Positions 3,555 to 46,610 are shown, counted from the stretch's first letter. The stretch is 64,000 bases of DNA from Entomortierella parvispora E1425 (GCA_020891255.1 BQFW01000001.1:2604001-2668000), one strand, 5' to 3'. A program made the numbers and translations. The notes: generated by a model from the letters alone, not told the origin.

Positions 3555-3585
<31 letters not shown>

Positions 3586-20770: not shown

Positions 20771-21257
20771 GATGCACGTTTTGCCACCAACCTCGCCGTT
20801 TTTTTTGGTGGCGTCAGTCACTCTGCAGGCCATCATGGCACCGCACAGCTTTTTACTCCACCCTACTCCCTCCTCAACGAGAGGAAATACAGCGGCAGAT
20901 AATAATAGAAATGACCCGCCCTGGATGCCACGTCGTTTCCCCAATTCTTGATTGTTTTTGTATTTACTGATGAACCACACAGCTGCTGAAGGGGAGGATG
21001 TTCTTCTGGTTGTGATGCTTCTGGGAAGCATACGGATGGCAGCATCCATGTCCCAGGCCACAGGTTTGCAACAGCCCTCAGTTCCCTTGAATTTTTTTTT
21101 TTTTTTTTGTTGTGTTCACGATGGTTGCATGGTCCCTTATTCGTTAGCCATTTTGGTCGCACCTGCGTCTTTTTTTTTTCTTTTTCTTTCTCCCACCCTC
21201 CCCCTTCCACTTCCCATCTCTACTGTATTGCAGACACACATGTCGATAGTTGGAATC
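20771..21257 (+). repeat. Conserved upstream block of the LRR-gene duplication unit (copy 1)
   Basis: Homologous to 42185-42596, about 25165-25647 and partly 38437-38609. Begins with GATGCACGTTTTGCCACCAACC. Confidence 0.85.
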
Positions 21258-24200
21258 ATGGAAAAGAGTCAAGGATTTCGTGTTGCTGGAACAACAGCCG
21301 ACATTGAATACATTGCCGTCAACCACGCCAAGGAGCAAGATGTCATCTTCTGGGAAGACATTCAAAGAGTGTTTCCTGGCGTGAAGTTTGTCCGGCGCGG
21401 TCACGTTGTACTCAGCATGCTGAGGACGCAGAATGGAGACAAGTAAGTGAGAGAGGGCCGAGTGACTGGAGTGTTTGGTCAAAAGCTGACAGCTCTGGTT
21501 TGAACCACTTTCCTCTAGATATAACCCAGAGCGCATCAAGTACCACCCAAACGAAGTCCTGAATGTTGAATTGGGTACCAACGACAACGACACTTTGGCC
21601 TCCATGGATGGTCGAATCGACATTCACTCAGCAGCTTCAAGCAGCGCGATCAACCCTGAGACGACCCCCATCAGCTTGCTCTCCGATACAATTTCTGACC
21701 TGGGAGTTGCCTCGGACCGGGTCATCATCTCTTCCACCATCGAACCTGGACTCACTACCTTGAAGAGAGCAAGCACAGCTGATATCCATAATATAACCAC
21801 TGCTCTTACGGAAGCAATTGAGCTCTCCAACGAGTCTGGGCAGCCCCTCACCAAGGATGAACTAACGTTGCTCGTCCGATCAAAGTTGCACTCGGAATTG
21901 CCGATCAAGTCCGCATTCGAATCCACAGTCCTTCGTGAGCTGGGTGCACTTCACGATCAAGGTGCTACCACACAGCAAATCTCAGCTACTACACAACAAA
22001 TCTCTGCGACCACACAACAAATCGTCCTCAAAGTATTGGAGCTGCAACGACAGATGAGCGATAGGCTGATTCTGATCCAGAGCAAGACGGAAGCTATCTT
22101 GACGCAGCAGTTGGAGCTGAATGAGTATCCCATCCCTCGGCTCTTTATTGTCTTGCCAGAGAAAATGTCAAAGTACGATGCTGGCACTTGGTTTAGGACC
22201 AAATTCCGTCTGTACTTCATCTGTGAGTGCGGTAAACATACCCAAACAGAGGGAAGCAAAACCCCTCACCATCTCCACCTGGCAAGACATGAAGGATATG
22301 TGATCCGAGAGCCAACCGAGTTTTTCAAGAAGTACGGCCCCTTTCTTGTTTTGATGTTGGAGCTCGTCAAGATCAGCACAAGTATCGCCAGTCATGCCGT
22401 GCCAGCATTGGTTACCTTCAAAATTGTCGAACTGGCTGATTCTGTCCAACAGACTATGGAAACTGTCACGGAAATGATTGACTACTCGCTTGAGTGCATT
22501 GACAAGCAAGCAGACAACGTTCGTTCATCTTCTCTGGGAGACCTGGACGACCCAGACAACCGTCCATCTAGAACACAACAGGACTTCACTAACTTTCTGA
22601 AAAATGTCGAGGGTCTTGAAGGCGTCGAATTACGGCAGCTAGGATCATTCTTGACCACGTCAAAGGCCGACAATCTCCTTGGGAACCTTTATCGAATGTC
22701 AACATCGGATGGACATATCAAATGGGTTTGTCGCGATCATTATCGTGCTGGTTACCAGAAGGCGAACGTTGACAAGTTGCGGAATATTGTCGAAAGCTCA
22801 GGAGGAACGTTTGACGAGCAATTGGGAGTGGTCAAAATATCTTTAAAGTCCAGTATTGCAGCCACGGAATTCTTTGATGCCCTCGCTAAAGCCAAGGGGG
22901 TGCTCGAGCTCATTGTCGATTTCAATTGGGAGTGTTCCTGGAAAGATATCGATACACTACGCAAAGCAATCAAGAGATCATCAGTTTCTACTCTCCATGT
23001 GGATCTCCAGCAGTTTAAGCCGAGCCTTCTGAGAACTAAGTTCTCCTCCTCAGTGCATTCTCGGTACGCACCTTTATCTCGACTGATGGAACCATTTCAG
23101 CTACGATCGGTTCACCTGATCCTTCCAGAAGACATCATCCGACTTTCCAACTTCACCCCTACAAGACCTTCACATCTTTACAAGCTAACTTTCGAGATGA
23201 TACTCGGGCGAAGAGCCGATGGCAAGGTTGCTAAAGTATTTGCAGAGGTGTCTAAGTCCAATTCAACATTGGTTTCTTGTTACTGCTCAACTGAAGAGAA
23301 AGGAGCCCAGGCGCTGTGGCAGGCACTCAAGACCCACTGGACGCTTGCCGCTCTGATCCTGGCTGGTTTTTCGATTAGAGAAAATGGAGCGCAGGCATTG
23401 GCAGAAGCACTCAAGACCAACTCGGCGTTGACCACTTTGGACCTGCGCACCAATTCGATTAGAGATTTAGGAGCACAGGCGTTGTCAGAGGTACTCAAGA
23501 CCAATTCGACACTGACCACTTTGGACATCGGTAGCAATAAGATTGGAGATTTAGGAGCACAGGCGCTGTCAGAGGCACTCAAGACCAATTCGACGCTGGC
23601 CACTTTCGACATGAGCGGAAATATGATCGGAGAATTAGGAGCACAGGCATTGTCAAAGGCACTCAAGACCAACTCGACGCTGACCACTTTGAACCTGTGG
23701 AGTAATTCGATTGGAGGGAAAGGAGCGCTGGCGTTGTCAGAGGCACTCAAGACCAACTCGACGCTGACCACTTTGAACCTGTGGAATAATTCGATTGGGG
23801 AGATGGGAGCAGAGGCGTTGTCAGAGGCACTCAAGACCAACTCAACGATGATCACTTTGAACCTGTGGAATAATTCTATTGGAGATTTAGGAGCACAGGC
23901 ATTGTCAGAGGCACTCAAGACTAACTCGACGCTGACCACCTTGAACCTGCGGAATAATTGGATTGGAGAGAAAGGAGCACAGGCACTGGCAGGGGCACTC
24001 AAGCCCAACTCAACGCTGATCACTTTGGAGATGGGTGGCAATTCGATTGGAGATTTAGGAACATGGGCTTTGTCAGAAGTGGTCCAGACCAATTCGACCC
24101 TGGCAACTTTGGACCTGAGCGACAATTCGATTGGAGATTTGGGAGCACAGGCGTTGTCAGAGGCACTCATGACCAACTCGACGCTGACCACTTTGGACAT

Positions 24201-24561
24201 GAGTGAAAATTCGATCGGGGAGGAGGGGGCATGGGCTTTATCGGAGACACTTGAGACCAACACAAACCTGACCACTTTGAACCTCTGGAACAATTGGATT
24301 GGAGATCTAGGAGCACAAGCCTTTTCAGTGGCACTCAAGACCAACTCGACGCTGACCACTTTAGACCTGCGCGCCAATTCAATTACTGATTTAGGAGCAG
24401 AGGCGTTGTCAGAGGCATTCAAGACCAACCCGACGCTGACCACTTTGAACCTGCGGTTTAATCCGATCGGAGATTTAGGAGCGCAGGCATTGACCGAGGC
24501 GTGCAAAGTCAACTCAGTCGTGGATGTCTTTACTGATCCATATTGTTCTTATTATTTTTAA
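21258..24561 (+). CDS. LRR receptor-like protein copy 1 (intact): N-module exon, central Cys/His domain, 13 canonical LRRs
   Basis: join(21258-21442,21519-24561) is in frame with a GT-AG intron and a CTGAC branch site. It carries 28-aa RI-like repeats ALSEALKTNSTLTTLxLxxNxIG. Confidence 0.9.
23395..24486 (+). repeat. 13 x 84-nt LRR tandem array
   Basis: Counted from the translation. Confidence 0.95.
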
Positions 24562-24786
24562 AAAGCATGCTCCTTGTCCGAAGTCACTAAACGTCTGCGT
24601 TGAAAGCTGAATGAAGTTCCTTCAATTCACCATGCCCAGGCCAGCCTTATAAAGATTAACAAATGGAGTAGGGCGAATTGATCTGCGGTCATTCCATAGA
24701 AGCGTCCACAGCAAAGAGCAAAACACAACAAAAGTTCGCAGTTCAACGCGAAAGTAATAGTTTAAATCTTAAAACAGATGCTTGCT

Positions 24787-25000
24787 TTACAACTTGGCCT
24801 TCAATTCTTTAACGGTATCGTCGAGCTTTTCTGATTCACCGTCGTTGTCAATAAGTCCAAGCCTCGTCATGGAACCTTCCAGTTTTGTCCAAGACTGTGA
24901 CATCCTTCATGTTCGCTGGCCCGACCAACGTTTTGTTCTCCATGCTCTTGCCTGCAATGATATCTCGGATCGTTTTGCACGGGACCTTGCCGGACCGGGA
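24787..25000 (-). pseudogene. Acyl-CoA synthetase 3' tail remnant A
   Basis: Matches the last exon of 46611-49582 from RSGK to the stop, with decay. Confidence 0.9.
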
Positions 25001-25647
25001 GGTGCAGACACAGGAACGGCAACGGCAATGGCAGCAGTAGCTGCCAGGAAGTGTTGGGAAACATTGCTGTCGTGCAGTTACCAGTCTGCCAATGGGATCT
25101 AGATCCAAATAAAGAAGTTAGAGGAGATGCCATTAGTCGTAGATCAAGAAACAACAGGAAAAGAGTAAGTCGCCGTTTTGCAACCAACCTCGCGACCTTT
25201 TCTTTTCTTTTTCTTTTTTTTTTTTTTTTTTTTTTTTTTTGGTGGAGCTATTCACACCGCACATCTTTGTACTCTACTCCCTCCCAAACGAGAGGAGATA
25301 CAGAAGCAGATAAAAATCGAAATGACCTGATTTGCCTGGATGCCGAGATTGTTTTTGTATTTACCGATGAACAACACTATTGGTGAGTAGAGGATGTTCT
25401 TCTAGAAACATAGTTGTGGTCCTCCTGGGAAGCAGAGAGTCAGTCACTAAATCCCAGGCCACAGGTTTACAACAGCCCATTCAGAAATTGATGGCGAAGT
25501 AATTTTTGGGTTCCCTTGAAATTTTTTTATTGTGTGCACGATGGTTGCAATGATCCCTCGTTCTCTTTTTTTTTTTTTTTTTTTTTTTCCCACAGTCCAC
25601 CATCTCTCCCATATCTATTACAGACACACAGAGAGCCGCTTTGGATC

Positions 25648-28483
25648 ATGGAAAAGAGTCAAGCATTTCGAGTATCTGGAACAACTGCCGACATCAAATA
25701 CATCGCCGTCAACCATGCCAACGAGCAAGATGTCATCTTTTGGGAAAATATCGAGCGCGTTTTCCCTGGGACCATGTTTGTCAGGTGCGGTCAAGTTGTT
25801 CTCGGCATGCTAAGAGATTCAAACGGAGTCAAGTAAAGTCGATGATAAATGAACTGAGTGGCCAAGGTATTTAGCCAAAGTTACACTGACAACCCTGGTT
25901 TTTGAAACTGTCCCTTTAGGTATGATCCAGAGCGCATCAAGCACTACCCGAATGAAGTCCTGGATATCTAATGGTCTTCTAATATCGATGGCACTCTGGC
26001 CACCAAGGATGGTCGAATCGACATTCACTCAACAGCTCCAAACGAGACGATCAGCCCCGAGTCGACTCCCCTCAACCTGCTCTCCAAGACTGTTTCTGAC
26101 CTCGCCATTTCCTCAGACCATGTCACAGTCTCCTCCACTGCGGAACCACGACTCTCAACCTTAAAGAGAGCAAACACAGCAGATATCCAGAATGTATCAA
26201 CCGCTATGATGGAAGCAATTGAGCTCGCCGACAAGTCTGGGCAGCTACTTTCCAAGGAGCAATTCACGTCGCTCCTCAAATCCAAGTTGAATCCAGGATT
26301 GCCGATCAACTCCGCATTCGAATCCACAGTCATTCGTGAGCTGGGTGCACTTCATGACCAAGGCGCTACGACACAACAAATTGTCAAGTTTTGCAGATGC
26401 AAATACAGATGAGCGACCGGTTGATTTTGATCCAGAGCAAGACGGAGGCCATCTTGACGCAGCAACTGGAACTGGTCGAGTATCCCATCCCTCGGCTCTT
26501 TATTGTCTTGCCCGAGAAAGTCTCAAAGTACGATGCGGCCACTTGGTTCAGGACCAAATTCCGTCTGTACTTTATCTGTGAGTGCGGCGAGCACACCCAA
26601 AAAGAGGAAAGCAAAGCCCCTCACCATCTCCACCTGGCGAGGCATCAAGGATATGTGATCAGAGAGCCAACCGAGTTTTTCAAGAAGTACGGCCCCTTTC
26701 TTGTTTTGATGTTGGAGCTCATCAAGATCGGCGCACGTGTCGCGAGTCATGCCGTGCCCGCTTTGGTTACTTTCAAAATTGTCGAACTGGCTGATTCTGT
26801 CCCACAGACTGTTGAGACTGTCACGGGAATGATCGACTACTCGCTTGAGTGCATTGACAAGCAGACAGAGAAGGTTTGTTCATCCTCTCTGGGAGAACTG
26901 GCCGACCTTGACAACCGCCCTTCAAACACTCAACAGGACCTTACCAACTATCTGAAAAATGTCGAGGGTCTAGAGGGTGTTGAGTTGCGCCAGCTAGGAT
27001 CATTCTTGACCGCGTCCAAGGCCGACAGTCTCCTTGGGAACCTTTATCGAATGTCAACATCGGATGGACACATCAAATGGGTGTGCCGCGATCATTATCG
27101 CTCCGGTTACCAGAAGGCGAACGTTGAAAAGCTACGGAATATTGTCGAAAGCTCAGGTGGAGAGTTTGACGAGCAATTAGGAGCAGTCAAAATGTCTCTG
27201 AAGTCCAGTATTGGGGCTGCAGTATTCTTTGATGCCCTTGCCAAAGCCAAGGGGGTGTTCGAGCTCATTGTCGATTTCAACTGGGAGTGCGCCTGGAAAG
27301 ATATCGATGCATTACTGTACACAAAGCAGTCGAGGGATCTTCAGTTTCCACTCTCCATGTGGATCTCCAGAGGTTTAAGCCAAAACCTAACCTTCTGAGA
27401 ACTAAGTTCTCCACCTCAGTACATTCTCGGTACGCACCTTTATCTCGACTGATGGAACCAATTCAACTGCGATCGGTTCACCTCATCCTTCCAGAAGACA
27501 TCATCCGACTTTCCAACTTCACCCCTATAAGACCTCCACGTCTTTACAAGTTAACTTTTGAGATGATAATCGGGCGAAATGAAGACGGCAAAGTGGCCAA
27601 CATTCTTGCAGAGGTGTCTAAATCCAATTCAACACTGGTTTCTTGTTACTGCTCATCTGAAGAGAAAGGAGCCCAGGCGCTGTGGCAGGCACTCAAGACC
27701 CACTGGACGCTTGCCGCTTTGGTCCTGGATAGATTTTTGATTGGAGATTTAGGAGCGCAGACGTTGTCAGAGGCACTCAAGACCAATTCGACGCTGACTG
27801 CTTTGTACCTGCGCACCAATTCAATTAGAGATTTAGGAACACAGGCTCTGTCAGAGGCACTCAAGACCAACACGACGCTGACCACTTTGGACCTGCGCAC
27901 CAATTCGATTGGAAATTTAGGAGCACAGGCGATGTCAGAGGCATTCAAGACCAATTCGACGCTGACCACTTTGGACATGAGTGGCAATAAGATTGGAGAT
28001 TTAGGAGCGCAGGCGTTGTCAGAGGCACTCAAGACCAACTCGACACTGACCACTTTGGACATAGGTGCCAATTCGATTGGAGAGAAAGGAGCGAAGGCGT
28101 TGTCGGAGGCACTCAGGACCAACTCGACGTTGACCACTTTGGACCTGTGGAACAATTCGATTGGAGGTTTAGGAGCGCAGGCGTTGTCAGAGGCACTCAA
28201 GACCAACTCGACGCTGACCACTTTGGACCTGGGGAGTAATTCGATTGGGGATTTAGGAGCACAGGCGTTGTCAGAGGCACTCAAGACCAACTCGACGCTG
28301 ACCACTTTGGACCTGGGGAGTAATTCGATTGGGGATTTAGGAGCACAGGCGTTGTCAGAGGCACTGAAGAGCAACTCGACGCTGACCACTTTGAACGTGC
28401 AGAATATTTCGATTGGAGGTAAAGGAGCACAGACGTTGTCAGAGTCTCTCAAAACCAACTCAGTCGTGAATATCATCCATTGA
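25648..28483 (+). pseudogene. LRR receptor-like copy 2 (8 LRRs), disrupted
   Basis: Same exon 1 (25648-25832) and intron. TAA at 25969-25971, a 4-nt deletion near 26386 and a 5-nt insertion near 27315. Confidence 0.9.
27761..28432 (+). repeat. 8 x 84-nt LRR tandem array
   Basis: Repeats 6 and 7 are identical at the DNA level. Confidence 0.95.
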
Positions 28484-28699
28484 TCCGTATGTGCAAACAC
28501 TACATGCTCCTCATCGTAAATCGCTAAACCGTTGTGTTTTATCTTCTCAGTAAAAATGAAATCGAGTGAAGTGCCTTAATTTGCAAATGCAAGCTCATGA
28601 TGAAGAGCAAGAAAAAAAAAAGAAAAAAAGAAAAAAAAAAATAAGAAAAAAAAGTGGAAGAGAGAGTATAGTTTGTGAACCTGGAATCAGATTCTCCTG

Positions 28700-29550
28700 A
28701 CTCACAACTTCGCCTTCATATCTTTAACCGTGTCGTCAACCTTTCTTGTCAGTCCATCATTACCAACAAGACAAGTCTCCGACATGGGCTCTTCCAGCTC
28801 TTTCTAGACCGTGACATCCTCAATGGTCACTGGCACGACCAACTTTTGGTTCTCCAGAGTCTTGCCCGCAATCATATCTCGGATTGTCCTGTGCAGAAAT
28901 CTTTCCCGACCGGGTCTTGCGAAAACGACGGATGATATACGTGGGTTGGTAATTGGCAATGGCGCCCAAGATTTTGTTGTACCGTCTGCGCCGTCTCCTT
29001 CTTGATCGACTCCTCGTCCTGAGTTACACCTCATTTAAACACCACCGGACCTACAAGGATCTGTCCCTTCAACTTGTCGGAGAGTGGGACCACATAGCAT
29101 TCCGAGATGACGGATGCTCTGCCAAGATCTTCTCCACGGATCCAGTCGATCGATGTCCTGCCACTTGCATGATGTCGTCCGTTCGTGGCATGACATGGAA
29201 GTAGCCATCGTCGTCCATAATACCCGCGTCGCCAGTGTCGTACTTAGCAGCCAGGGAACCTGGACAGTATCTTTTTTTGAAACCCAGCGAGAATAAGGCT
29301 GAGGGTGGCAATGGTGGTTTGACCACAATGTTGCCAAAGGTCGACGGTCCCTATTCCTTGGCCACACCACTTGTTTCTTATGGATCAGACAGGACTCTGC
29401 AAATCCCCGAAGGATCAACATTGGGTCAATGTGTGTGCCACGAGCAACATAGAGTTCTTGACAAGCTCCTGTAGTCGATGTCCTAACTCGAGTCGTCCAA
29501 TAATTGTCCACCACGGGCTTGGCTCCCATGATACGTCTGAAGTTTGCGAT
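28700..29550 (-). pseudogene. Acyl-CoA synthetase 3'-half remnant B
   Basis: Frameshifted or deleted copies of KPVVDNYW, YDTGDAG, RTDDIMQVAGHR and TIRD.IAGK.LENQKL. Confidence 0.9.
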
Positions 29551-33012: not shown

Positions 33013-35594
33013 ATGTCAGAAGTCAACGCCCAGGAAAGAGTCCCTACCGGACCTGTAGGATCCCCGCCTTCATATGCTACACATGACCAGACACCCCCAG
33101 AGTCACCCCGCTCCTCACCAGATCGCGCCACGCCCGTCAGAACCTCGTCTTCGACCTCTTCCCTGGACCATCTGCCTCCAGCCATGAGCGCACAAAGATC
33201 CACCCCGGCGCCGTCTCAAGAGCATTCCGATATGGTTGCCCACACGAGCGACCTTGTTTTAGAAGACGACGAGGACGAGGGCGACGATGCAGATCATGAC
33301 CGCGAAGAGGACGACGAGGATATCCGTCGAGCCTCTGCCCTAGCAGGACGACGCAGAAGCTATGGCCACCACCACCACCCTAGTTCGGGCTCTAGACCTC
33401 AGCAACGTCAGCAACTCACGCTTCCAGCGGCCACCGCCGCATCTCTTTTGAGTCACAATACCAATCAGCCAGCGTTGACGCATGCGGTCGCCGGGTCAGC
33501 GGCGTCGTACAGCTATTCGCCCACGATTCCCAGTCGATCAGACACTGGCGTCTCCTCGGTTTCATCGAGTCGCAGCAACTCCAGGAGGAACAGTCTTACG
33601 CAGCAACAGCAGCAGCAGAGTCAGAACAGCATCTCGCCCTTCTCGTTCTTCACGCACAAAGACGAACATCCGTCCTCGAGTGGGAGTGGCACCAAGACGC
33701 TGAAGATTGAGCTGGCGCATCCAGAGGTTGTCCTGAAGAGTGGCGAGATGACGACGATGAAGGGCATCGTGTATGTGAACTGCCACAAGCCAGTCAAGGT
33801 CAAGACGTTGCTCCTCGAGTTCTCTGGACGGTCCTCAGTAACCTGGGTCGATGGTAAGCTACTTTTTATAACTGGCCGTGAGTCAGCGACGAGACATGGG
33901 GAGGGCAGGAGAGTGATCTTCTACTGTGTGGAAGTGCTCTTCTCTCTTTCTCTCCTCTCGTCCCTCTGACCTTGAGAGCCGTGTGAGAAAAAGAAAAAAA
34001 AAATGAGCTAAAAAAAAGGGAAAAAAAGCGTCCACTCACCGCGCGCTTGTGATTTCGCCCATTCCTTTGCGTAGACAATGCTTATTCGCCCGCCACCCGC
34101 CACACCACCGCGCCTCATATTGAGCACTCCTGGACCCTGGTCGGTCATCAGCACAAACAGCCACCAACCATTTTGGCACCTGGACAGCATGCTTTCACTT
34201 TTAGCCTGGACATGCCCGAGACTTTGCCCGAGACTTTGACCACGACGCACGGAAAAGTCGCCTATAGATTGACCGCCACGCTCAACAAACCAGGATTGAC
34301 GTTTCATTCTTCCTCAGTGACGATCCCTGTCACCATCTTGCGTCGCCAATCTGTTCAGGCATCCAGGGCTTATCAGCGAGGAGGAAGGGCTGCGAGCAAA
34401 CCCGAGGACCAAGTTTCGTACAAGATCAGCATGCCCCAAACCCGGGTCCCTCACAGCACAAAAATCCCACTTCAGGTGTCTATCACTGCGCCCAGCACTC
34501 GGACCAACATCAACGTTCTCCAAGTCAGTCTCTGGGAGCGCGTTGTGTACAGGGCCGATGGTCGCAAGCGAGTCGATTTGAGACTGGTCAAGATTCAAAA
34601 GTCAGAAGGTTGGGCTCGACCCCCTCATCAGGAATCTGACGCTGTGACATGGAACAAAGTCTTGTTGTTTGACATGCCCCCAATTGGATCAGAGCAGAAT
34701 CAGTGCAACCCTTCAGCCGACAATGGGCTGATGAAGGTGACCCACATGCTGCGTTTCTCGATTTTGGGAGCCGAGGGCACGAAGCGATTCCGACTTGAAA
34801 ACGACATTGATCTGAAGGTTCTAGCATTCGAGGATGAATACCAAATGGATGACGAGGACGACTTTGAAGACGAGGAGGACGAGTTTGAAGAACAGCAAGA
34901 AGGTCATGTGGAGATTGTCGATGGTCACCCTGTACGTGTCGTTCGTCGTCGTCGCCGCCGAGGCGAGGATCGAGACGGACTTCCGTCCTACCTGACCTCC
35001 TTCTCGACACCTCGCGTTTCGTTTGATTCAGAGCGGGACATGGATCCGGCAGATGACGATCTGTTGAGGGCCATGGTGGCTCGCATCCATTTGCCAACCT
35101 ACGCAGAGTCGGAATCGGATATCAACAGCCGGAACCCGTCCAGGGATGTGAGTCGAAATGCCAGTCGTGCAGCGAGTCGGAGCACCAGTCCAGAGCGTGG
35201 AATCTCTGGATCTTCAGGATTTGTCCCGAATGCGACTATCATTACTGCTTCAGGAGGTGGATTCTTCCAGCAACACCCTCAACACACGCCATCCCCTATT
35301 CACCAGCATCATCATCATCACCATCCCCACCACGGGGTCCATAGTCCTCAGCACCACCATCTGCATCATCAGCCTCATGGTCATAGTCCTCTAGCGGGTT
35401 CTCCTCCTAGAGTACTTTCTCCTGCGGATGGCGGGCCACCCACCGAGCGTAGGTCTTCGGATCCTCAGGGACAACAGCGGCGAGAAGGAGAGCAGGAACT
35501 GCATCAGCAGCACGAAAACGCTGCTCTTCAGCATCCACAACCTCGTATATCCAGCACTGTGACCCCTCTTCCGGAATCTGAGAAGGGCTATTGA
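33013..35594 (+). CDS. Alpha-arrestin (ART-type adaptor), one intron about 33855-34075
   Basis: KGIVYVNCHKPVKVKTLLLEFSG, GQHAFTFSL.MPETLPET, HGKVAYRL; LPSY and LPTY motifs. Confidence 0.85.
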
Positions 35595-35833
35595 ATTAAT
35601 GGACAAGACTGCAAAGGGTCTTCTAGATAACCTCTCGAGTGTTTGTCAATCCTTCATAAACAGGGAAGAACCACATCATATACCAGAAGCATTACAGAAA
35701 AAATAAAACGGCGCCGCGCCACCCAAGTTCATGCCCACCAAATAATTTGAGGTTTCTTTTTGCACGACATTTCAATCTCTTCATCCCATCCCCTTCTCAT
35801 TCCATTCCCCATCATTCATCTACAACCAAGAGC

Positions 35834-37357
35834 ATGAACCACACCCGGCAGAATGCTCTCTATATCCCCGAGATACTCCTCGCCGTCAGTGAGCATCTAA
35901 CTACTTCGTCGCTGCTCCCCTGTCTCTGCGTCTCGCGCGCCTTCCACGCGATCCTCTCTCCCATGTTCTGGACGGATATTTGTATGAGCGCCACAAGCGC
36001 CAAAAGCACCGGCAAGCAGGAGCCCACCCTCGGAGCGGTTTTGAATCATGCGCACTTGATCCGTAACCTCACCCTTCGTTACGCCAGCGCCGAGGATCAT
36101 TTTGACGAAGGGTGGAGGGTAGTCTTTTCCAACCTCACCCACCTTTCGATCGAGCGGCGGGGTCCTGATGGATCCATCCTTCTGCCATCACTGGCATCCT
36201 TTATTCAAAACAACAAGGCTACGTTGGTCAACTTCACCATGGATCATCAATTCGTGGACGATAATGCGCTGGAGGCATTGTGTGAATGCCCGCGATTGAA
36301 AGAGTGCAGACTTGCCCATCGGCTCCTGATCGACGACCCTGACCGTTGGACTAGCCAATTTGAACGACTTTGGTCCAGACTCGAAGTTGTTTCGTTGCGA
36401 GAGCCAATGACCGGTAGTAAGTACATCCCCTTGAAGACTTGTCCAACGGATTGGTCAGCACCGAGGGATTCGACAGGACAACCCCTCGGCAACCAGATTC
36501 TCGATTTGACGCTCTCCAACTATAACAACTATGTATATGAGGCACAGCTGTGGATATTGCTGAGGTGTACGAATCTGAAGAAGCTCTCGTGGTACATCAA
36601 GGGCAAGGAGATCATGACACCGATGCAGCAACTGGCTAAAATCATCCAGCAGGGCCATTCTTGTCAGCAACTGGAAGAACTTCGGATGGGGTACATGAAC
36701 TTTGAGAACACGGACTTTGCATCCTTGCTGTCGTCCATAAGTCAACTGAACCTACTGGATCTCCGTTATTCGAGCTTTGACGGAGAATCTTGGGAATGCT
36801 TACTGGACGAATCCAAGCATTTGAGAACCTTGGCCGTCTTGGATTTGACGGCGTGTCATGGCTTACCAGGCTGGGTTGTTCAAGAAATACTATGCGAGAT
36901 GCCGAACCTGAAGGTGCTCCGGGCCCCCGAAATGGAAGACATGAATATCTTGAGACATGATCTGCCTTGGGTGTGTCAGGAACTGGAGGAACTGGAGCTG
37001 ACCTTTATTCTACGCAAAGAGGTGTATGGGAAGGACTTGATCCTGACCCGGCTTTCAGAGTTGACAAAACTACAAGTGCTTCTGGTTGATTTTTTTAGAT
37101 CCAAGCCCATGACGGATCTTCGCAACTTTTGGACAGAGGATGGAGAGGATCATTTAAGTCTGTCGGTACACGAGGTAGAAGGAGGGGCCGAAGTAGGAGG
37201 GGGACTGGATCATTTGCGGACATTGAGACGACTGCGCGTGGTGTCAGAATCTATGGTTTTGTACAGGCGTCAGGAGGAAGCAGAGTGGATTGTGAAGAAC
37301 TGGCCTCGGCTGGAGGGTCCGGTGAAGGATGGGGTCACCCAGGTTCTGATGCGCTGA
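35834..37357 (+). CDS. F-box / RNI-like LRR protein (intronless)
   Basis: MNHTRQNALYIPEILLAVSEHL...CLCVSRAF, and C-terminal VQEILCEMPNLKVL and LPWVCQELEEL shared with 1947-3398. Confidence 0.85.
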   Translation: MNHTRQNALYIPEILLAVSEHLTTSSLLPCLCVSRAFHAILSPMFWTDICMSATSAKSTGKQEPTLGAVLNHAHLIRNLTLRYASAEDHFDEGWRVVFSNLTHLSIERRGPDGSILLPSLASFIQNNKATLVNFTMDHQFVDDNALEALCECPRLKECRLAHRLLIDDPDRWTSQFERLWSRLEVVSLREPMTGSKYIPLKTCPTDWSAPRDSTGQPLGNQILDLTLSNYNNYVYEAQLWILLRCTNLKKLSWYIKGKEIMTPMQQLAKIIQQGHSCQQLEELRMGYMNFENTDFASLLSSISQLNLLDLRYSSFDGESWECLLDESKHLRTLAVLDLTACHGLPGWVVQEILCEMPNLKVLRAPEMEDMNILRHDLPWVCQELEELELTFILRKEVYGKDLILTRLSELTKLQVLLVDFFRSKPMTDLRNFWTEDGEDHLSLSVHEVEGGAEVGGGLDHLRTLRRLRVVSESMVLYRRQEEAEWIVKNWPRLEGPVKDGVTQVLMR

Positions 37358-37706: not shown

Positions 37707-38210
37707 ATGCTCGCTTTCGAATACCTTGTGATAGCGATAGCGATAGCCATTCTCATCTTTGCTTGCCGCCGCTGTGAGTGTGTGGGCAGCGTTAGCTACC
37801 AGGGAGATGTGGCGCCTCCGCAGCCCATCATCGTTTCAATCCTGGGCTCCTCGCCCTATGAAAACACGATGCCACCGATATCACGGCACTCTCCCTCGAT
37901 GCGCGATGACTATCAGGATGCAGCTCTCGCTTCCCAACTGGCGTGGCAACAGCTACACCAACAGCTACAGCATCAGCCTCAACCACAGGCACAGGCACAG
38001 GTACAGCCATTGGGAGCTGCTGTTGTCTCTACTTTGACTTCAGAGCAAGAAGACGAAGAGTTGCCGGCTTATAAACGGAATCCAGATCCGGATACAGAGG
38101 TTCGGAGGGAGGGAGATCACCAGGCCGTGGTTGTCGTGGACCCGGAGACGGCGGAGACGGCGGAGACGGAAGCGCCACCGCCCGCGTATGTTATGCCACC
38201 AACCTCATAG
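37707..38210 (+). CDS. Small single-pass membrane protein with PY-type motifs (167 aa)
   Basis: N-terminal hydrophobic helix followed by CRRC; LPAY and PPPAY motifs. Confidence 0.65.
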   Translation: MLAFEYLVIAIAIAILIFACRRCECVGSVSYQGDVAPPQPIIVSILGSSPYENTMPPISRHSPSMRDDYQDAALASQLAWQQLHQQLQHQPQPQAQAQVQPLGAAVVSTLTSEQEDEELPAYKRNPDPDTEVRREGDHQAVVVVDPETAETAETEAPPPAYVMPPTS

Positions 38211-38609: not shown

Positions 38610-41600
38610 ATGGAAAAGAGTCAAGCATTTCGAGTTGCTGGCACAACAGCCGATATCAGACACATCGCCGTAAACCATGTCAATGGGCAAGATGTCATCT
38701 TCTGGGAAGATATTGAGTGCGTTTTCTCCGAGGTCAAGCTTGTGCAGCTCGGTCATGTTGTGCTCAGCAAGTTGAGGGATTTGAACGGAATCAAGTAAAG
38801 AGAACAACATCCCGAACTGGGTCGACCCAATTATTTGGCAAAGTAAACTGACAGCCCTGGCCATGCACCTCTTCCTTTTAGATGCAACCCAGAGCGCATC
38901 AAGTACCCGAATGAAATCCTGGACATTGAATTGTTCAACACCGTCGACGGCACTCTGACTTCCATGGATGGACAAATCGATCTCAGTACAATTGTTCCAA
39001 CCCACACGATCAACCCCAAGTCGAGTCCCAACCACCAACTCACCGAGACAACATCTGACCTCTCTGTTTCTTCAGAACCCATCAATGCCTCTTCCACCGC
39101 CTCTTCCACCGCCTCCTCCACCGTCTCTTCCTCCGCCAAACCGCTAATCACAACTTTGAAGAGAGCCAGCACAGTTGATATCCATAACATCTACGCAGCC
39201 CTGACTGAAGCAATTAAGCTCACCGACAAATCAGGGCGGCCACTCTCCAAGGAACAACTTACTTCACTCCTTCGATCCAAGCTGTACTCGGAATTGCCAA
39301 TCAAATCAGCCTTCGAATCCACAGTCATTCGTGAGCTGGGTGCACTTCACGACCAAGGCGCCACAACACAACAAATCGTCCTCAAAGTTTTGGAGTTGCA
39401 ACGACAGATGAACGATCGGTTGATTCTGATCCAGAGCAAGATAGAGGCTATCCTGACGCAGCAGTTGGAACTGACCGAGTACCCTATCCCCCGGCTGTTC
39501 ATTGTCTTGCCCGAGAAGGTCTCCAAGTACGATGCTGCCAATTGGTTCACGACCAAATTCCGTCTATACTTTGTCTGCGAGTGCGGCGAGCATACCCAAA
39601 CAGAGGGAAGCAAAACCCCTCATCATCTCCACTTGGCGCGACATGAGGACTATCTGATCCGAAAGCCCACAGAGTTTTTCAAGAAGTACGGCCCCTTTCT
39701 CGTTTTGATGTTGGAGCTCATCAAGATCAGCGCCAGTGTCACAAGTCATGTTGTGCCCGCGTTTGTTACCTTCAAAATCATCGAGCTGTCAGATTCTGTC
39801 CAACAGACTGTGGAGACGGTGACGGAAATGATCGATTACTCGCTCGAGTGCATTGACAAGCAGACGGAAAAGACTCGATCATCGTCTAATGGAAATATGA
39901 ATGAGGGAGAGAATCGACCTATAATGACTCAACAGGATCTCAACAGCTATCTAGGAAATATCGAGGGAGTCGAGGGAGTCGAGTTACGCCTTTTAGGATC
40001 GTTCTTGAACGCCTCCAAGGTGGATAATACTCTTGGAAATCTCTATCGAATGTCCACACCGGATGGGCACATCAAATGGGTTTGTCGCGATCATTACCGC
40101 TCCGGTTACCAAAAGGCGCACGTTCAAAAGCTGCGGGATATTATCGCGAGCACTGGCGGAACGTTTGACGAGCAATTAGGAACGGTGGAAATATCTCTAA
40201 AGTCCAGTATTGCAGCAACGGAATTCTTTGACACCCTCGCTAAAGCCAGAGGTGTTCTCGAGCTCATCGTGGATTTTAATTGGGAATGCGCCTGGAAAGA
40301 CATTGAGGCTCTACACAAAGCCATCAACAGATCCTCCGTATCGACTCTCCACGTTGGCCTACAGATGTTCAAGCCAAGCCTGCTCAAGTCTCAATTTTCG
40401 TCGATAGCCCCACGGTATGAACCCTTGTCTTGACTGATGGAACCGATTCAGTTGAGATCGGTTCACCTCATCCTCCCACAAGACATTGTCAGACTCTCCA
40501 ACTTTGCTCCCAAAAGACCTCCCCACCTTCGTAAGCTAACCTTCGAGATGGTAATAGGGAAGAGTGTCGACCATAGAGCAGTCAAGGTCCTGGCCGAGGT
40601 GTTTAAATCCAACTCGACCAGGATTTCTTGCTATTGTTCAACGGCGGATAAAGGAGTAGAGGCGTTGGCAGAGGCGCTCAAGGCCAACTCAACAATGACC
40701 ACATTGGACATGAGTGTCAACTCAATTGGAGAAAAGGGAGCACAAGCGTTGTCTGAGGTACTCCGAACCAATTCAAGGTTGACCACTTTAACCATGAACA
40801 ACAATTCGATCGGAGAGAGAGGCGTCGAGGCACTGTCCGAGGCCCTCAAGACCAACTCGATGTTGACCACGTTGGATGTTAGCTACAATTCGATCGGAGA
40901 GAGAGGGGCGCAATCATTGTCAGAGGCGCTCAAGGTCAACTCCACACTTTGCATTTTGAACATGAGTGACAATTGGATTCGAGAGAAAGGAGCCCAGGCG
41001 TTGTCGGAGGCGCTCAAAAGCAACTCAAGGCTGACCTCTCTGAACATCAATGACAATTGGATTAGAGAGAAAGGAGCGCAGGCGCTGTCAGAGGCACTCA
41101 AGATCAACTCGACGCTGACTACTTTGAACATGTTTTACAATAAGATTGGCGGGAAGGGAGCTCAGGCGTTATCAGAGGCGCTCAAGATCAACTCGACGCT
41201 GACCACTTTGGAGATGAGTGGCAATTCGATTGGGGATTTGGGAGCGCAGGTCTTGTCAGAGGCACTCAAGACCAACACGACGCTCACCACTTTGAACGTG
41301 GGCTACAATTTGATTGGGGTAGAGGGAGTGGAGGCGTTGTCAGAGATACTCAAGACGAACTCGACGCTGACCGCCTTGGACATGAGTCATAATTCTAGGG
41401 GGGCGAAAGGAATACATGCGTTGGCCAAGGCACTCAAGGCCAATTCAAGGCTGATTTCTTTGGGCATGAGCCGCAACTCGATTGGAGATGAAGCAGCCCA
41501 GGCGTTGTCAGAGGCACTCAAGACCAACTCGACGCTGACCACCTTGAACCTGTGGGACAACTCGATTGAATGGAAAGGAGCACAGGCGTTGGCAGAGGCA

Positions 41601-41720
41601 CTCCAGACCAACTCGACGCTGACCACTTTAAACATGAGTAACAATGTGATTGGAGGGGAGGGGGCATGGGCTTTGATCGAGGCACGAAAGACCAACTCGG
41701 TCGTGAACATCATCACGTAG
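38610..41720 (+). pseudogene. LRR receptor-like copy 3 (12 LRRs), one in-frame TGA
   Basis: join(38610-38794,38882-41720) is in frame except TGA at 40431-40433, which is CGA in the other three copies. Confidence 0.8.
40662..41669 (+). repeat. 12 x 84-nt LRR tandem array
   Basis: Counted from the translation; the most divergent repeat set. Confidence 0.95.
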
Positions 41721-41783
41721 TTATTTTTACATCACTCCCACCGTCTTATTTCACTAAACCGTGGAGAAGCAGATTCCTTCCCC

Positions 41784-41997
41784 TCAAAACTTTGCCCTCA
41801 TGTCTTCAACAGTGTTATCAACCTCTCCTGATTTACCATCATTGTCAACAAGTCCAAGCTTCGTCATGGAACCTTCCAATTTTGTCCAAGACCGTGACAT
41901 CCTCCATGGTCGCTGGCCCAACCAACGTTTTGTTCTCCATGCTCTTGCCTGCAATGATATCTCGGATCTTACCGCACGGGATCTTGCCTGACCGGGA
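41784..41997 (-). pseudogene. Acyl-CoA synthetase 3' tail remnant C
   Basis: Same extent and breakpoint as remnant A. Confidence 0.9.
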
Positions 41998-42596
41998 GTT
42001 GCAGACACAGCTACGGCCACGGCAACGGCAGCAGTAGCTGCCTGGAAGCTATTGGGAAACATTGCTGTCGTGCCATGCAGACCGTCAGAGCAAGAAGAAC
42101 AGTCTACCAATGGGATCCAGATCCAAATAAAGAAGCTAGATGCCATTAGTCGCAGACCAAGAAACAGGGACAGAGCACGTCGCTGATGCACGTTTTGCCA
42201 CCAACCTCGTCTTTTTTTTGGTGGCGTTATTCATTCTGCAGGCCATCATGGCACCACACAGCTTTTTTCTCTACAACAGCACATAATAATAGAAATGACC
42301 TGCCCTGGATGCCACGTTGTGCCCCCAATTCGAGATTGTATTTGTATTTATCGATGAACCACACAGCTGTTGAAGGGGAGGATGTTTCTTCTGGAAGCAT
42401 AGCTGTGGTCCTTCTGGGAAGCAGACGGATCGCAGCAACCATGCAGGTTTGCAACAGCCCTCAGTTCCCCTGGAATTTTTTTGTTGTGTTCACGATGGTT
42501 GCATGGTCCCTTGTTCGCTTTGCCATTTTTGGTCTCATCTGTGGTTTTTTTTCCTTCCCATCTCTATTGCAGACACACACGTCGCCAGTTGGAATC

Positions 42597-45500
42597 ATGG
42601 AAAAAAGTCAAGGATTTCGAGTTGCCGGAGCAACAGCCGACATTGAATTCATTGCCGTCAACCGTGCCAATGAGCAAGACGTCATCTTCTGGGAAGATAT
42701 TCAGGCAGTCTTTCCTGGCGTGAAGTTTGTCCGGCGCGGTCATGTTGTACTTAGCATGTTGAGGGATTCAAACGGAATCATGTAATGTCAACTCATAAGG
42801 AGCGAGTGACCAAGATGTTTGGCCCAAAAAGACTGACAACCCTGATCTTGAACTTTCTTTAGAAATAACCCGAGGCGGATCAAGCACTTCCCTAATGAAG
42901 TTCTGGGTATTGAACTGTCTACCACAATTGACAGCACTCTGGCTACCATGGATGAGCAAATCGACATTCACTCAGCAGCTCCACATGCCACGATCCACCC
43001 CGAGTCGATCCCCATCAGCCCGCCCTCCGAGGTCTTTTCTGGCCAAAGCCAACCTGCCGCGTCTGAACCCATCGTCGTCTCCTCCGCGGCAGAACCACGA
43101 CTCACAACCTTAAGAAGATTAAACACAACAGATGTCCATAATGTATCAACCGCTATGGTGGAAGCAATTGAGCTCGCCGACAAGTCTGGGCAGCCACTTA
43201 CCAAGGAACAATTAACGACGCTCCTCAAATCCAAGTTGAATTCAGGATTGCCGATCAATTCAGCATTTGAATCCACGGTCTTTCGTAAGCTTGATACACT
43301 TCACGATCAAGGCGCTACGACACAGCAGATTGTCCTTAAGATTTTGGAGGTGCAAAAACAGATGAGCGATCGGCTGATTCTTATTCAGAACAGGACGGAA
43401 GCTATCTTGACGCAGCAATTGGAACTGGCCGAGTTTCCCATCCCTCGGCTCTTTATTGTCTTGCCAGAGAAGGTCTCCAAGTACGATGCCACAAATTGGG
43501 TCAGAACCAAATTCCGTCTGTACTTTATTTGTGAGTGCGGCGTACATACCCAAACAGAGGAAGGCAAAACCCCTCACCATCTCCACCTGGCGAGACATGA
43601 AGGATATGTGATCCGAGAGCCAACCGAGTTTTTCAAGAAGTACGGCCCCTTTCTTGTTTTGATGTTGGAGCTCATCAAGATCAGCACGAGTATCGCCAGT
43701 CATGCGGTGCCAGCGTTGGTTACCTTCAAAATTATCGAGCTGGCTGATTCTGTCCAACAGACTATGGAAACTATCACGGAAATGATCGACTACTCACTCG
43801 AGTGCATTGACAAGCAGACAGAGAAGGTTCATGCATCCTGTCTGGGAGACCTGGATGACTCTGACAACCGTCCTTCAAGAACTCAACAGGACCTCACCAA
43901 CTATCTGAAAAATGTCGAGGGTCTTGAAGGAGTCGAGTTGCGCCAGCTAGGATCATTCTTGACCGCGTCAAAGGCCGACAATCTCCTTGGGAACCTTTAT
44001 CGAATGTCAACATCGGATGGACACGTCAAATGGGTATGCCGTGATCATTATCGAGCTGGATACCAAAAGGTGCAGGTTGAAAAGCTGCGGAATATTGTCG
44101 AAAGCTCAGGTGGAAAGTTTGATGAGCAATTGGGAACGGTCGAAATGTCGTTGAAGTCCAACATTGCAGCCACTGAATTCTTTGCTGCCCTCGCTAAAGC
44201 CAAGGGGGTGATCGAACTCATTGTCGATTTCAATTGGGAGTGCGCGTGGAAGGATGTCGATGCATTACGGAAAGCAATCAAGGGATCTTCAGTTTCTACT
44301 CTCCATGTGGATCTCCAGATGTTTAAGCCGAAACCTAGCCTTCTGAGAACTCAGTTCTCCTCCTCAGTACATTCTCGGTACGCACCCTTGTCTCGACTGA
44401 TGGAACCAATTCAGCTGCGCTCGGTTCACCTCATCCTTCCAGAAGACATCATCCGACTTTCCAACTTCACCCCTACAAGACCTTCGCATCTTTATAAGTT
44501 AACTTTCAAGATGATAATCGGGCGGAATGATGATGGCAAAGTGGCCAAAGTTCTTGCAGAGGTGTCTAAATCCAACTCAATGGTGGTTTCATGTTACTGC
44601 TCAACTGAAGAGAAGGGAGCACAGGCGCTGTGGCAAGCACTGAAGACCAGCTCGACGCTAGCCGCTTTGATTCTTGATAGATTTAGGATTAGAGAAAAAG
44701 GGACGCAAGCATTGGCAGAGGCACTCAAGACCAACTCGACGTTGACCACTTTGGACATCAGTGGCAATTCGATTGGAGAGATTGGAGCACAGGCGCTGTC
44801 AGAGGCACTCAAGACCAATTCGACGCTGACCACTTTCGACATGAGTGGAAATAAGATTGGAGAATTAGGAGTACAGGCGCTGTCAGAGGCACTCAAGACC
44901 AACTCGACGCTGAACACTTTGAACCTGTGGAATAACCCGATTGGAGAGAAAGGAGCACAGGCATTGTCAGAGGCGCTCAAGATCAACTCGACGCTGACCA
45001 CTTTGAACATGAGATACAATGGGATTGGAGAGAGAGGAGCACAGGAGTTGGCAGAGGCACTCAAGACCAACTCGACGCTGACCAGTTTCAACCTGTGGAA
45101 TAATTCGATTGGAGAGAAAGGAGCAGAGGCGTTGTCAGAGGCACTTAAGACCAACTCGATGCTGACCACCTTGAACCTGCGGATGAATTCGATTGGAGAG
45201 AAAGGGGCACAGGCATTGGCAGAGGCACTTAAGATTAATTCTACGCTGACCACATTGAACCTGCGGATGAATTCGATTGGAGAGAAAGGGGCACAGGCAT
45301 TGGCAGAGGCACTGAAGCCCAACTCAATGCTGATCACTCTGGAGATGGGTAGCAATTCAATTGGAGATTTAGGAGCATGGGCTTTGTCAGAGGCGGTCAA
45401 GGCCAATTCGACTCTGGCAACTTTGGACTTGTGGAATAATTCGATTGGAGAGAAAGGAGCAGAGGCGTTGTCAGAGGCACTTAAAACCAATTCTACGCTG

Positions 45501-46304
45501 ACCATTTTGAACCTGCGGATGAATTCGATTGGAGAGAAAGGGGCACAGGCATTGGCAGAGGCACTCAAGGCTAACTCAACGCTGATCGCTTTGGAGATGG
45601 GCGGCAATTCAATTGGAGATTTAGGAACATGGGCTTTGTCAGAGGCGGTCAAGACCAATTCGACCCTGGCAACTTTGGACCTGTGGGATAATTCGATTGG
45701 AGATTTAGGAGTACAGGCGTTGTCAGAGGCACTCATGACAAATTCGACGCTGACCTCTTTGGACATGGGTGGAAATTCGATCGGAGAGGAGGGGGCATGG
45801 GCTTTATCGGAGGCACTCGAGACCAACACAAACCTGACCACTTTGAACCTGTGTAATAATTCGATTGGGGATCTAGGAGCACAGGCATTTTCAGTGGCAC
45901 TCATGACCAACTCGACGCTGACCACTTTGGACCTGCGCGGCAATTCAATTAGTGGCTTCGGAGCACAGGCGTTGTCAGAGGCACTCAGGACCAACTCGAT
46001 GCTGACCACTTTGGACATGGGTGGAAATTCGATCGGAGAGGAGGGGGCATCGGCTTTATCGGAGGCACTCGAGACCAACACAAACCTGACCACTTTGAAC
46101 CTGTGTAATAATTCGATTGGGGATCTAGGAGCACAGGCATTTTCAGTGGCACTCATGACCAACTCGACGCTGACCACTTTGGACCTGTGCGGCAATTCAA
46201 TTAGTGGCTTCGGAGCACAGGCGCTGTCAGAGGCACTCAGGACCAACTCGATGCTGACCACTTTGAACCTGCGGCTCGATCTGATCGGAGATTTAGGAGC
46301 GTAG
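42597..46304 (+). CDS. LRR receptor-like copy 4 (19 LRRs), C-terminal cap lost to a late TAG
   Basis: join(42597-42781,42863-46304) is in frame. TAG at 46302-46304 replaces the CAG of copy 1, and the ALTEACKVNSVVDV cap continues after it. Confidence 0.85.
44709..46304 (+). repeat. 19 x 84-nt LRR tandem array with 252-nt block duplications
   Basis: 45759-46010 and 46011-46262 are near-identical. Confidence 0.95.
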
Positions 46305-46610
46305 GCATTGACCGAGGCATGCAAGGTCAACTCAGTCGTGGATGTCATTAGCTGAACCATATCCATAGTTATTATTTTTACAAAGCATGCTCCTTGTCTT
46401 AAGTCACTAAACGTCTGCGTTGAAAGCTGCATGCAATTCCTTCAATGGACCATGCCCTGGCAGCCATAAAAAGATTAACAAATGGAGTAATGTGAATTGA
46501 TCTTTGATCATTCCATAGAAGCGTCCACGGCAAAGAGCAAAAAACACAACTAAAGTCCGCAGTTCAAGGCGAAAGTAATAGTTTATGATCTTAAAACAGA
46601 TGCTCTTGCT

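Follow-up and report, generated by a model that had tools for sequence, protein, structure and literature searches.

The locus examined here raises the question of whether a cluster of leucine-rich repeat (LRR) genes in Entomortierella parvispora belongs to a receptor family of a kind that fungi are held to lack. Published reviews describe fungi as being without LRR-type receptors and fungal NLRs as using ANK, WD40 or TPR repeats, in agreement with what the first-pass annotation of this DNA had stated (PMC9119436, PMC10197012). Most fungi possess large NLR repertoires, with the Mucoromycotina as an exception (PMC9119436). Our results identify the genes of this cluster as members of a real and undescribed, Mortierellaceae-specific family of NOD-less, receptor-like proteins, and our literature search found no paper on this LRR family.

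In the window, that is, the whole stretch of 64,000 nucleotides analyzed, a tblastn search that used copy 1 minus its LRRs as the query recovered exactly four copies, all on the plus strand, and none elsewhere. They form two tandem pairs (copies 1 and 2, copies 3 and 4), with about 10 kb of ordinary genes between the pairs. An F-box/LRR gene at 35747-37357 lies inside the cluster and is separate from the four paralogues. The proposal that the four share one architecture was borne out by their domain order. Behind the N-module, which we also refer to as the head domain, come a disordered linker rich in S, T and P, several helices of which the last has about 40 residues, a core with conserved Cys and His motifs, degenerate LRRs, canonical LRRs and, except in copy 4, a C-terminal cap.

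Copy 1 (EMPS_00756) is the sole fully intact copy. Its exon 1 (21240..21442, 100% match to P0002) carries the first 61 codons of the N-module, with the annotated start at 21240, a conserved ATG at 21258 as read from the sequence, and a GT donor at 21443. A 76-nt GT..AG intron in phase 2 (21443..21518) separates it from exon 2 (21519..24561), which encodes the end of the N-module and all subsequent domains through the cap, including 13 canonical LRR units of 28 residues each at 23386-24477. Copy 2 (about 25648..28483, partly annotated as EMPS_00757) retains exon 1, the intron and exon 2 with eight canonical units (27752-28423), but is a pseudogene with two frameshifts in the assembled sequence, near 26382 and near 27314. 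Copy 3 (38610..41720), the most divergent of the four and likewise a pseudogene, has 12 canonical units (40653-41660) and a single in-frame TGA at 40434-40436, a stop that a second, independent contig of this sample confirms without mismatch. Copy 4 (EMPS_00763) consists of exon 1 (42597..42781, N-module), an intron (42782-42862) and exon 2 (42863..46304) with 19 canonical units (44700-46295). It ends at a premature in-frame stop at 46302-46304, 17 codons ahead of the ancestral end, behind which the normal tail is still readable. Taken strictly, the earlier statement that copy 1 alone is fully intact is thus correct. Copy 4, however, is missing just the C-terminal cap; it carries a gene annotation and has a spliced transcript.

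The duplicated unit extends beyond the coding regions. By self-blastn, a 5' flank on the plus strand (20768..21239), which is probably promoter and 5' UTR, shows about 80% identity among copies 1, 2 and 4, and a 3' flank (24562..24999, also plus strand) recurs after copy 4 (46420-46822) and copy 3 (41788-42183). A unit of about 4 kb, duplicated long ago, gave rise to the local cluster. The four copies constitute one species-specific clade with 100/100 support, and DNA divergence among them is about 20-26% (about 80% identity). The copies are therefore old, and turnover has not been fast.

The family is strongly expanded and lineage-specific: it comprises more than 536 matches, and the 120 matches listed are all Mortierellaceae or metagenome entries, with some genomes supplying more than 10 of these best 120. 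In Linnemannia hyalina the best homologue is a singleton, as is the sister gene in E. parvispora; both lie among housekeeping genes, with neighbors that differ, so that clustering is not a trait of the family. Clustering with birth-and-death turnover had been put forward as typical of immune-receptor loci; here a local clade with pseudogenes and repeat-number change stands, whereas fast turnover and family-wide clustering do not. The survey of fungal sequences with an N-module profile that had been suggested was carried out as an exhaustive search, an earlier word-based search having matched only two proteins of the window, which reflects a limit of that tool. It matched 974 protein clusters, the named ones all from Mortierellaceae. 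For the N-module itself, some fold matches, whose accessions could not be checked, hint at a broader distribution.

We observed none of the hallmarks of an NLR nucleotide-binding domain. There is no Walker A motif ([AG]x4GK[ST]) in P0001, P0002 or P0003, and Pfam searches returned no NACHT, NB-ARC or AAA match, in line with the earlier view that the proteins lack a P-loop and are not NLRs. An apparent NACHT fusion, P0141, was considered as a link to NLRs and rejected; it consists of two ORFs 200 bp apart that were merged by annotation. No known death, toxin, executioner or signaling domain was found.

The C-terminal solenoid is of the RI/NLRC type. Its repeats are 28-29 residues long, follow the consensus LxxLxLxxNxI..G..L and build a horseshoe, and LRR_6 (PF13516) matches with E values of 1.2e-59 and 1.2e-74 in Pfam. 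Over residues 464-720, the structure model aligns with the LRRs of NLRP2, NOD2, NLRP3, RI and RanGAP at Z 13-15, with Z about 15 for NLRP2, NOD2 and RI. Structurally, the proteins thus carry the C-terminal superstructure-forming repeats of NLRs, with a putative sensor role. Tandem Repeats Finder reports 13.3, 9.5, 12.5 and 19.3 units of 84 nt in copies 1-4, and our in-register count gives 13, 8, 12 and 19 canonical 28-residue units, the same numbers as counted initially; an irregular first unit and a cap come in addition. In copy 4, the solenoid starts near residue 465, about 225 residues before the canonical repeats, as degenerate LRR turns.

Repeats have been gained through recent duplications of units or blocks. 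Copy 4 contains a 252-nt block (45792-46043) whose first two units are copied at 46044-46211 with 98.8% identity. Repeat identity is 0.764 within genes and 0.760 between genes; the repeats show positional orthology between paralogues, not strong concerted evolution. Amino acid variation is concentrated at repeat positions 3, 19, 21, 22, 24, 27 and 28, which form the concave face. Based on pairwise Nei-Gojobori-style counts over 52 in-register units, dN/dS is 0.58-0.87 at the variable positions compared with 0.28-0.32 in the framework, a marginal contrast (Fisher p = 0.077) and a ratio that is inflated by the two pseudogenes among the four copies. The suggested test for selection at LRR positions thus gives a marginal elevation of variable over framework positions and no support for positive selection at the concave positions, with omega below 1 everywhere.

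At the other end of the protein, a conserved intron interrupts the N-module after codon 61. This exon boundary is seen throughout the family, and many gene calls of 61 residues match profile positions 1-61. AlphaFold2 models the N-module as a beta-grasp fold with pLDDT above 90. In a wide VIA search, the best fold match was the TDP-43 NTD (Z 8.3, rmsd 2.0 over 70 residues), and the second was also TDP-43; the other 48 rows looked ubiquitin-like or beta-grasp, as judged by name. Similarly, the top four Foldseek PDB matches were TDP-43 NTD, followed by DIX and PB1, and an ESM Atlas shape match to TDP-43_N clusters gave TM 0.64-0.79. Language-model feature scores against PF18694 clusters were 0.92-0.94 with 172-186 shared features, which exceeds the tool's guide values for membership of the same family, values never calibrated on parts of proteins. 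At the level of sequence profiles, Pfam returned no match at E up to 10 for any of 41 N-modules (TDP-43_N and Crinkler PF20147 included), and a search of the PDB with the N-module profile did not retrieve TDP-43 chains. By predicted structure and language-model features, the N-module is thus best matched to a TDP-43_N/DIX-like beta-grasp domain. It is portable, heading not only this LRR family but also Sel1-repeat and ARM-repeat proteins.

The Cys/His core, with near-invariant CxCxxH, HxxxH and WxCxxH motifs conserved across the copies, has no recognizable relatives in the collections that we searched. There was no Pfam family match for single sequences and 76 members at E up to 10, no match in PADLOC or NCBIfam, nothing consistent among all PDB sequences for the core profile at E up to 10, and a best ESM Atlas feature score of just 0.49. 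The possibility that the core is NACHT-like was rejected, since hhalign of its profile with a Mortierella NACHT region gave a probability of 0.1%. A Roco-like core was rejected as well; there was no Pfam Roc/COR match, and the PDB profile search returned no Roco chain at E up to 10. The PDB sequences searched presumably include LRRK2 and bacterial Roco chains. The core probably binds zinc and may act as a structural or regulatory hinge. This role is a guess because residues 253-438 are poorly modeled (pLDDT mostly under 60, AlphaFold2 with 53 sequences).

As to expression, a contig from the strain's own sample (X1) contains copy 4 in spliced form, joining 42781 to 42863. No run is listed as RNA, but one run of the genome's own sample behaves as RNA, and copy 3 has hardly any coverage in it. 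Coverage in this run is genic only, which suggests that it is the project's RNA-seq of mycelium cured of its endobacterium (PMC8759367); a Mycoavidus endosymbiont lives in the sequenced strain (PMC8759367). Copy 4 would thus be expressed in the absence of any bacterial partner, and so is at least not strictly induced by challenge.

What might such proteins do? We tentatively favor, at somewhat less than an even chance, a multigene Mortierellaceae family whose products are cytosolic, receptor-like LRR proteins lacking a NOD. A cytosolic location is consistent with the absence of a strong hydrophobic segment (maximum 19-residue Kyte-Doolittle mean of 1.52), and the head domain occupies the protein from residue 1 on, which leaves, as far as we see, no room for a signal peptide. 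The concave face of the LRRs would bind ligands, different ones for different paralogues. The helices would dimerize the protein, and the head domain would link ligand binding either with head-to-tail self-assembly or with a single downstream partner common to these proteins. The head would thereby fill the role taken in NLRs by the NOD together with death-fold or TIR domains. The least-supported step is the setting, which may be the recognition of variable, probably biotic ligands from bacteria or endobacteria, from mycoparasites or from other fungi. Endobacteria are present in many Mortierellaceae. On the opposing side, numerous housekeeping functions are known for RI-type LRR proteins as well. 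A role in immunity or non-self recognition is plausible as a reasonable hypothesis, not a finding. The strongest version appears doubtful to us, namely that these are innate-immune receptors of Mortierellaceae without a nucleotide-binding switch, in which a foreign ligand on the LRR, Sel1 or ARM solenoid causes the head to polymerize into a signaling filament, much as death-fold or TIR domains do for NLRs, and which would amount to the first LRR-based non-self recognition in fungi.

Alternatively, the proteins could be substrate or cargo adaptors, with a ubiquitin-like head that docks on the proteasome, a segregase or an E3 and a solenoid (LRR, Sel1 or ARM) that picks endogenous targets, in parallel to the F-box/LRR genes, of which this genome likewise has many. 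We consider this unlikely on present evidence, but several observations are in keeping with it. The head is a beta-grasp fold, and its VIA matches include the UBLs of the shuttle factors Rad23, Ddi2, BAT3 and Herp at Z 5-6; however, its best structural and feature matches belong to the polymerizing TDP-43_N/DIX class and not to shuttle UBLs. Omega below 1, expression of copy 4 in axenic, cured mycelium and the location of other family members as singletons among housekeeping genes all fit an adaptor, whereas the pseudogenes, the species-specific duplication and the change in repeat number suggest that individual members are dispensable. An F-box/LRR gene does lie inside the cluster, but the four paralogues contain no ubiquitin-system domain, and Pfam found no F-box in any segment of their proteins.

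Two further explanations are, in our view, quite improbable. A ubiquitin-like header could mark exported, exchanged or selfish proteins of an effector or conflict repertoire, in the manner of Crinklers. PMC5289972, citing other work, describes CRN headers as ubiquitin-like. Crinklers resemble the present family in having ubiquitin-like N-terminal headers, varied C-terminal modules and expanded families, also in Mucoromycota; this logic of a header with a variable C terminus and the lineage-specific expansion fit, and by shape the head matches a Crinkler cluster (PF20147) from Mucoromycota with TM 0.60. The TDP-43_N matches are clearly better, however, and the C-terminal modules here are binding solenoids (LRR, Sel1 and ARM) instead of enzymatic toxin domains. 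Membership among Crinklers was rejected because the Pfam model finds no header, with no PF20147 match for 41 N-modules at E up to 10. The same low probability applies to structural or cytoskeletal scaffolds of the RanGAP, CARMIL, tropomodulin/leiomodin or axonemal N-DRC type that were duplicated neutrally in the repeat-rich genomes of Mortierellaceae. RanGAP1, CARMIL, tropomodulin and axonemal LRR proteins align with the LRR part as well as NLRs do, and the precomputed Pfam label is LRR_TMOD-LMOD. Scaffold-type RI-LRR proteins are conserved and low-copy, whereas the present family is confined to one fungal family, in whose genomes it has many divergent paralogues; its repeat numbers vary, it includes pseudogenes, and its non-LRR domains are without counterpart in such scaffold proteins.

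With this family, the Mortierellaceae have a large and variable repertoire of NLRC-type LRR proteins whose front end is different and undescribed. If the head is a polymerizing signaling module common to LRR, Sel1 and ARM sensors, it would represent a new logic of receptor assembly and would also provide testable candidates for the perception of bacteria by these fungi. Otherwise, there would still be two uncharacterized domains, the head and the Cys/His core, in hundreds of proteins.

By comparison with known systems, the N-module shares its fold with the TDP-43 NTD (PF18694) and DIX/PB1 domains, which were the best matches in four independent searches, and like the domain of TDP-43 it is located at the very N terminus of the protein. 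By contrast, the partners of the TDP-43 and DIX domains are RRMs or Wnt-pathway domains and not LRR, Sel1 or ARM solenoids. No sequence similarity between them was found at the HMM level; polymerization of the N-module is a prediction from the fold. According to PMC9119436, the LRRs of the fungal adenylyl cyclase Cyr1 sense bacterial peptidoglycan. Cyr1 is likewise a cytosolic fungal LRR protein, and the likeness is by analogy only. Cyr1 differs in being a conserved enzyme that contains PP2C and cyclase domains, and its LRRs are of another type. It is single-copy, and its RA domain is a ubiquitin fold that precedes the LRRs. Fungal NLRs of the HET-E/HET-D type (Dyrka et al. 2014, PMC4986451) combine a NOD with WD40, ANK or TPR repeats, whereas the present proteins have NOD-less LRRs with omega below 1 and no strong concerted evolution. 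Both join a modular N-terminal domain to a C-terminal repeat solenoid, have expanded in particular lineages, gain repeats when units are duplicated and vary at few positions of an otherwise conserved repeat. Animal NLRC/NLRP proteins differ in having NACHT/NB-ARC domains with a Walker A motif and an N-terminal death-fold, TIR or CARD domain, all of which the present family lacks; yet the LRR class and horseshoe are shared with them and with RI, and NLRs, too, are cytosolic proteins that join an N-terminal non-repeat module to C-terminal LRRs.

Four paralogues lie on the + strand of the window, at 21240-24561 (copy 1), approximately 25648-28483 (copy 2), 38610-41720 (copy 3) and 42597-46304 (copy 4), and tblastn, queried with copy 1 minus its LRRs, identified exactly these four and none further within the 64 kb. 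The best protein matches in the databases assign the window to Entomortierella parvispora. By these matches, EMPS_00756 (P0002, 1081 aa) is copy 1, EMPS_00763 (P0001, 1208 aa) is copy 4, and EMPS_00757 (P0003) is part of copy 2. In each copy, a first exon of 185 nt supplies codons 1-61 of a conserved N-terminal domain (N-module, or head) and is followed by a short GT..AG intron, which for copy 4 is borne out by a contig joining position 42781 to 42863. The long second exon encodes, in order, the end of the N-module, a linker rich in S, T and P, helices, a Cys/His core with the near-invariant motifs CxCxxH, HxxxH and WxCxxH, and 28-residue LRRs. Many metagenome "proteins" of 61-62 residues (P0217, P0219, P0225 and P0227, among others) match positions 1-61 of the N-module profile exactly. 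These entries are first exons called as genes, and the intron position is thus conserved across the family. The arrays of 84-nt units in copies 1-4 comprise 13.3, 9.5, 12.5 and 19.3 units according to Tandem Repeats Finder, and counting canonical LRR units in register gave 13, 8, 12 and 19, the same figures as in the first-pass annotation. The absence of a P-loop, which it had also proposed, agrees with our search for a Walker A motif, which found none in the proteins of the cluster. Antisense ORFs of 284-612 aa running through the LRR arrays (23280-24512, 27646-28500 and 44594-46432, all on the - strand) result from the 84-nt periodicity and do not represent separate genes.

An AlphaFold2 model of copy 4 residues 1-720, built with 53 homologues, is confident for the N-module (residues 1-82, pLDDT above 90) and from approximately residue 440 onward. 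In between lie a disordered linker (83-149), a helical segment (150-252) in which one helix spans about 40 residues, and the core (253-438), which is modelled poorly. In structural alignment, the LRR domains of NLRP2, NOD2, NLRP3, RI and RanGAP fit onto residues 464-720 at Z 13-15, so that the modelled solenoid starts about 225 residues ahead of the canonical repeats. Modelled alone, the N-module adopts a beta-grasp (pLDDT 86). When its structure was compared exhaustively with 48,161 PDB representatives, the TDP-43 N-terminal domain ranked first (Z 8.3, rmsd 2.0, 70 residues) and second, and Foldseek likewise ranked it first, with DIX and PB1 domains next. A shape search of the ESM Atlas gave TM 0.64-0.79 against TDP-43_N clusters, for which language-model feature scores were 0.92-0.94. 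HMM searches did not see a relationship to TDP-43, and we therefore name the domain only TDP-43_N-like, by predicted fold and language-model features, leaving homology open. Searches of the Cys/His core against Pfam, PADLOC, NCBIfam, PDB sequences, Atlas features and a NACHT region yielded no match, and the PDB search lent no support to a likeness with Roco/COR proteins; the core probably binds zinc.

Copy 1 is intact. Copy 2 has two frame changes, near 26382 and near 27314, copy 3 has a single in-frame TGA at 40434-40436, and copy 4 ends at a stop at 46302-46304, 17 codons short of the ancestral end, with the tail behind this stop still readable. A contig assembled independently from the sample that also gave the genome covers the copy 3 TGA without mismatch. 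Within the helix-encoding part of copy 1, a 21-nt tandem repeat of 2.9 copies (21964-22023) encodes an ATTQQIS-type heptapeptide, and the first frameshift of copy 2 (near 26380) falls at the corresponding site, which suggests a slippage-prone spot. Sequencing run X1 shares its sample with the genome, has coverage limited to genic sequence and contains the spliced junction of copy 4. Since the genome announcement reports RNA sequencing of endobacterium-cured mycelium (PMC8759367), X1 is most simply taken as that library. If so, copy 4 is transcribed and spliced; copy 3 is almost without coverage in this run. Run X5, from another isolate under the same species label, gave for 40405-46404 only pieces of 88-92% identity from the core and LRRs and left the unique 5' region of copy 4 uncovered, although contigs cannot prove absence. 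Presence/absence, strong divergence or loose use of the species label may explain this pattern.

A maximum-likelihood tree built from the core region groups all four copies in one clade (support 100/100), with EMPS_02592, on another contig, as its sister. DNA identity is about 80% among copies 1, 2 and 4 and about 74% between copy 3 and the others. The duplications are thus species-specific, though not recent. The duplicated unit spans about 4 kb, which takes in some 0.5 kb of flanking sequence 5' and 3', and the array consists of two tandem pairs about 10 kb apart. The spacer holds an arrestin-like gene (33013-35594, with Arrestin_N/C matches in 34173-35594 and perhaps an upstream exon at 33013-33969), an F-box-like plus LRR gene (35747-37357) and small ORFs, one of which (167 aa, 37707-38210) encodes a single hydrophobic segment and, close to its end, a PPPAY motif. 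The cluster lies between Sey1 and a gene for an AMP-binding enzyme. The homologues that we examined outside the window are singletons among housekeeping genes.

Most LRR units pair best with the unit at the equivalent position in another copy, and mean unit identity is the same within genes as between genes (0.764 versus 0.760), so that concerted evolution is not strong. Neighbouring copy 2 units at 28172 and 28256 are 98.8% identical, as are copy 4 units 45792 and 45876 compared with 46044 and 46128, so that repeat number has grown through recent duplications of units and blocks. Among the 52 in-register units, amino acid entropy is highest at repeat positions 3, 19, 21, 22, 24, 27 and 28, on the concave face, and the LRR helix is almost invariant. 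In comparisons that take in two pseudogenes, dN/dS was 0.64 at variable versus 0.29 at framework positions for all pairs and 0.87 versus 0.32 for close pairs, and pN/pS for ten reciprocal-best pairs was 0.58 versus 0.28 (Fisher p = 0.077). This shows weaker constraint at positions exposed in any LRR and does not demonstrate diversifying selection.

Searching with the non-LRR part as the query identified more than 536 proteins. The 120 matches listed are either from genera of the Mortierellaceae or metagenome entries without a name, and some genomes supply more than ten of these top 120. An N-module profile scored against 1.84 billion representatives matched 974 clusters, 320 of them below 1e-10, and all ten matches checked by name are Mortierellaceae. 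About half of the best 150 of the 974 clusters carry the core plus LRRs; the rest carry Sel1 repeats, ARM repeats or nothing recognisable. In AlphaFold DB clusters the same head (TM about 0.8) occurs on proteins that are Sel1/HCP-like, RNI-like or uncharacterised, and it is thus a portable module set ahead of various binding solenoids. An apparent fusion to NACHT in the database protein P0141 was rejected, the annotation having merged two ORFs 200 bp apart. On the Mortierella alpina contig concerned (L003, 1206-6204), 200 bp separate the family ORF (1478-4318) from a NACHT ORF further downstream on the same strand (4522-6204), an adjacency that may reflect chance or functional pairing. Several AlphaFold DB and ESM Atlas structures that match the N-module well (E about 1e-6, TM about 0.75) may, judging from their accessions, be bdelloid rotifer entries, and one of them carries the annotation of an integrase catalytic domain protein. 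Rotifera are also among the sources of the nearest RI-type LRR clusters (several clusters). Horizontal transfer or contamination is possible behind the putative rotifer N-module matches.

The most economical mechanism would be that the LRR binds a ligand, that the protein dimerises through its helices and that the head in turn brings about oligomerisation or recruitment, all three steps being inferred. A role in non-self recognition, though not demonstrated, fits several facts, namely the family expansion, the dispensability of single copies, the changes in repeat number, the location of the variable residues and the endobacterial lifestyle of the host. In the PDB search, the rows beyond TDP-43 were ubiquitin-like or beta-grasp, judged by name, and the proteins might instead be ubiquitin-like adaptors for endogenous targets. 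The Atlas shape search also placed a Mucoromycota Crinkler cluster at TM 0.60, and a Crinkler-like effector or a selfish family is a further rival to non-self recognition, as are structural scaffolds.

Our literature searches found no description of the present family. Reviews consider LRR receptors absent from fungi (PMC9119436, PMC10197012), which bears out this background claim. In conclusion, our results establish a real, hitherto undescribed and receptor-like family that combines a putative LRR sensor of the NLRC type, in the absence of a NOD, with a probable zinc-binding core and a TDP-43_N/DIX-like head common to other solenoid families.
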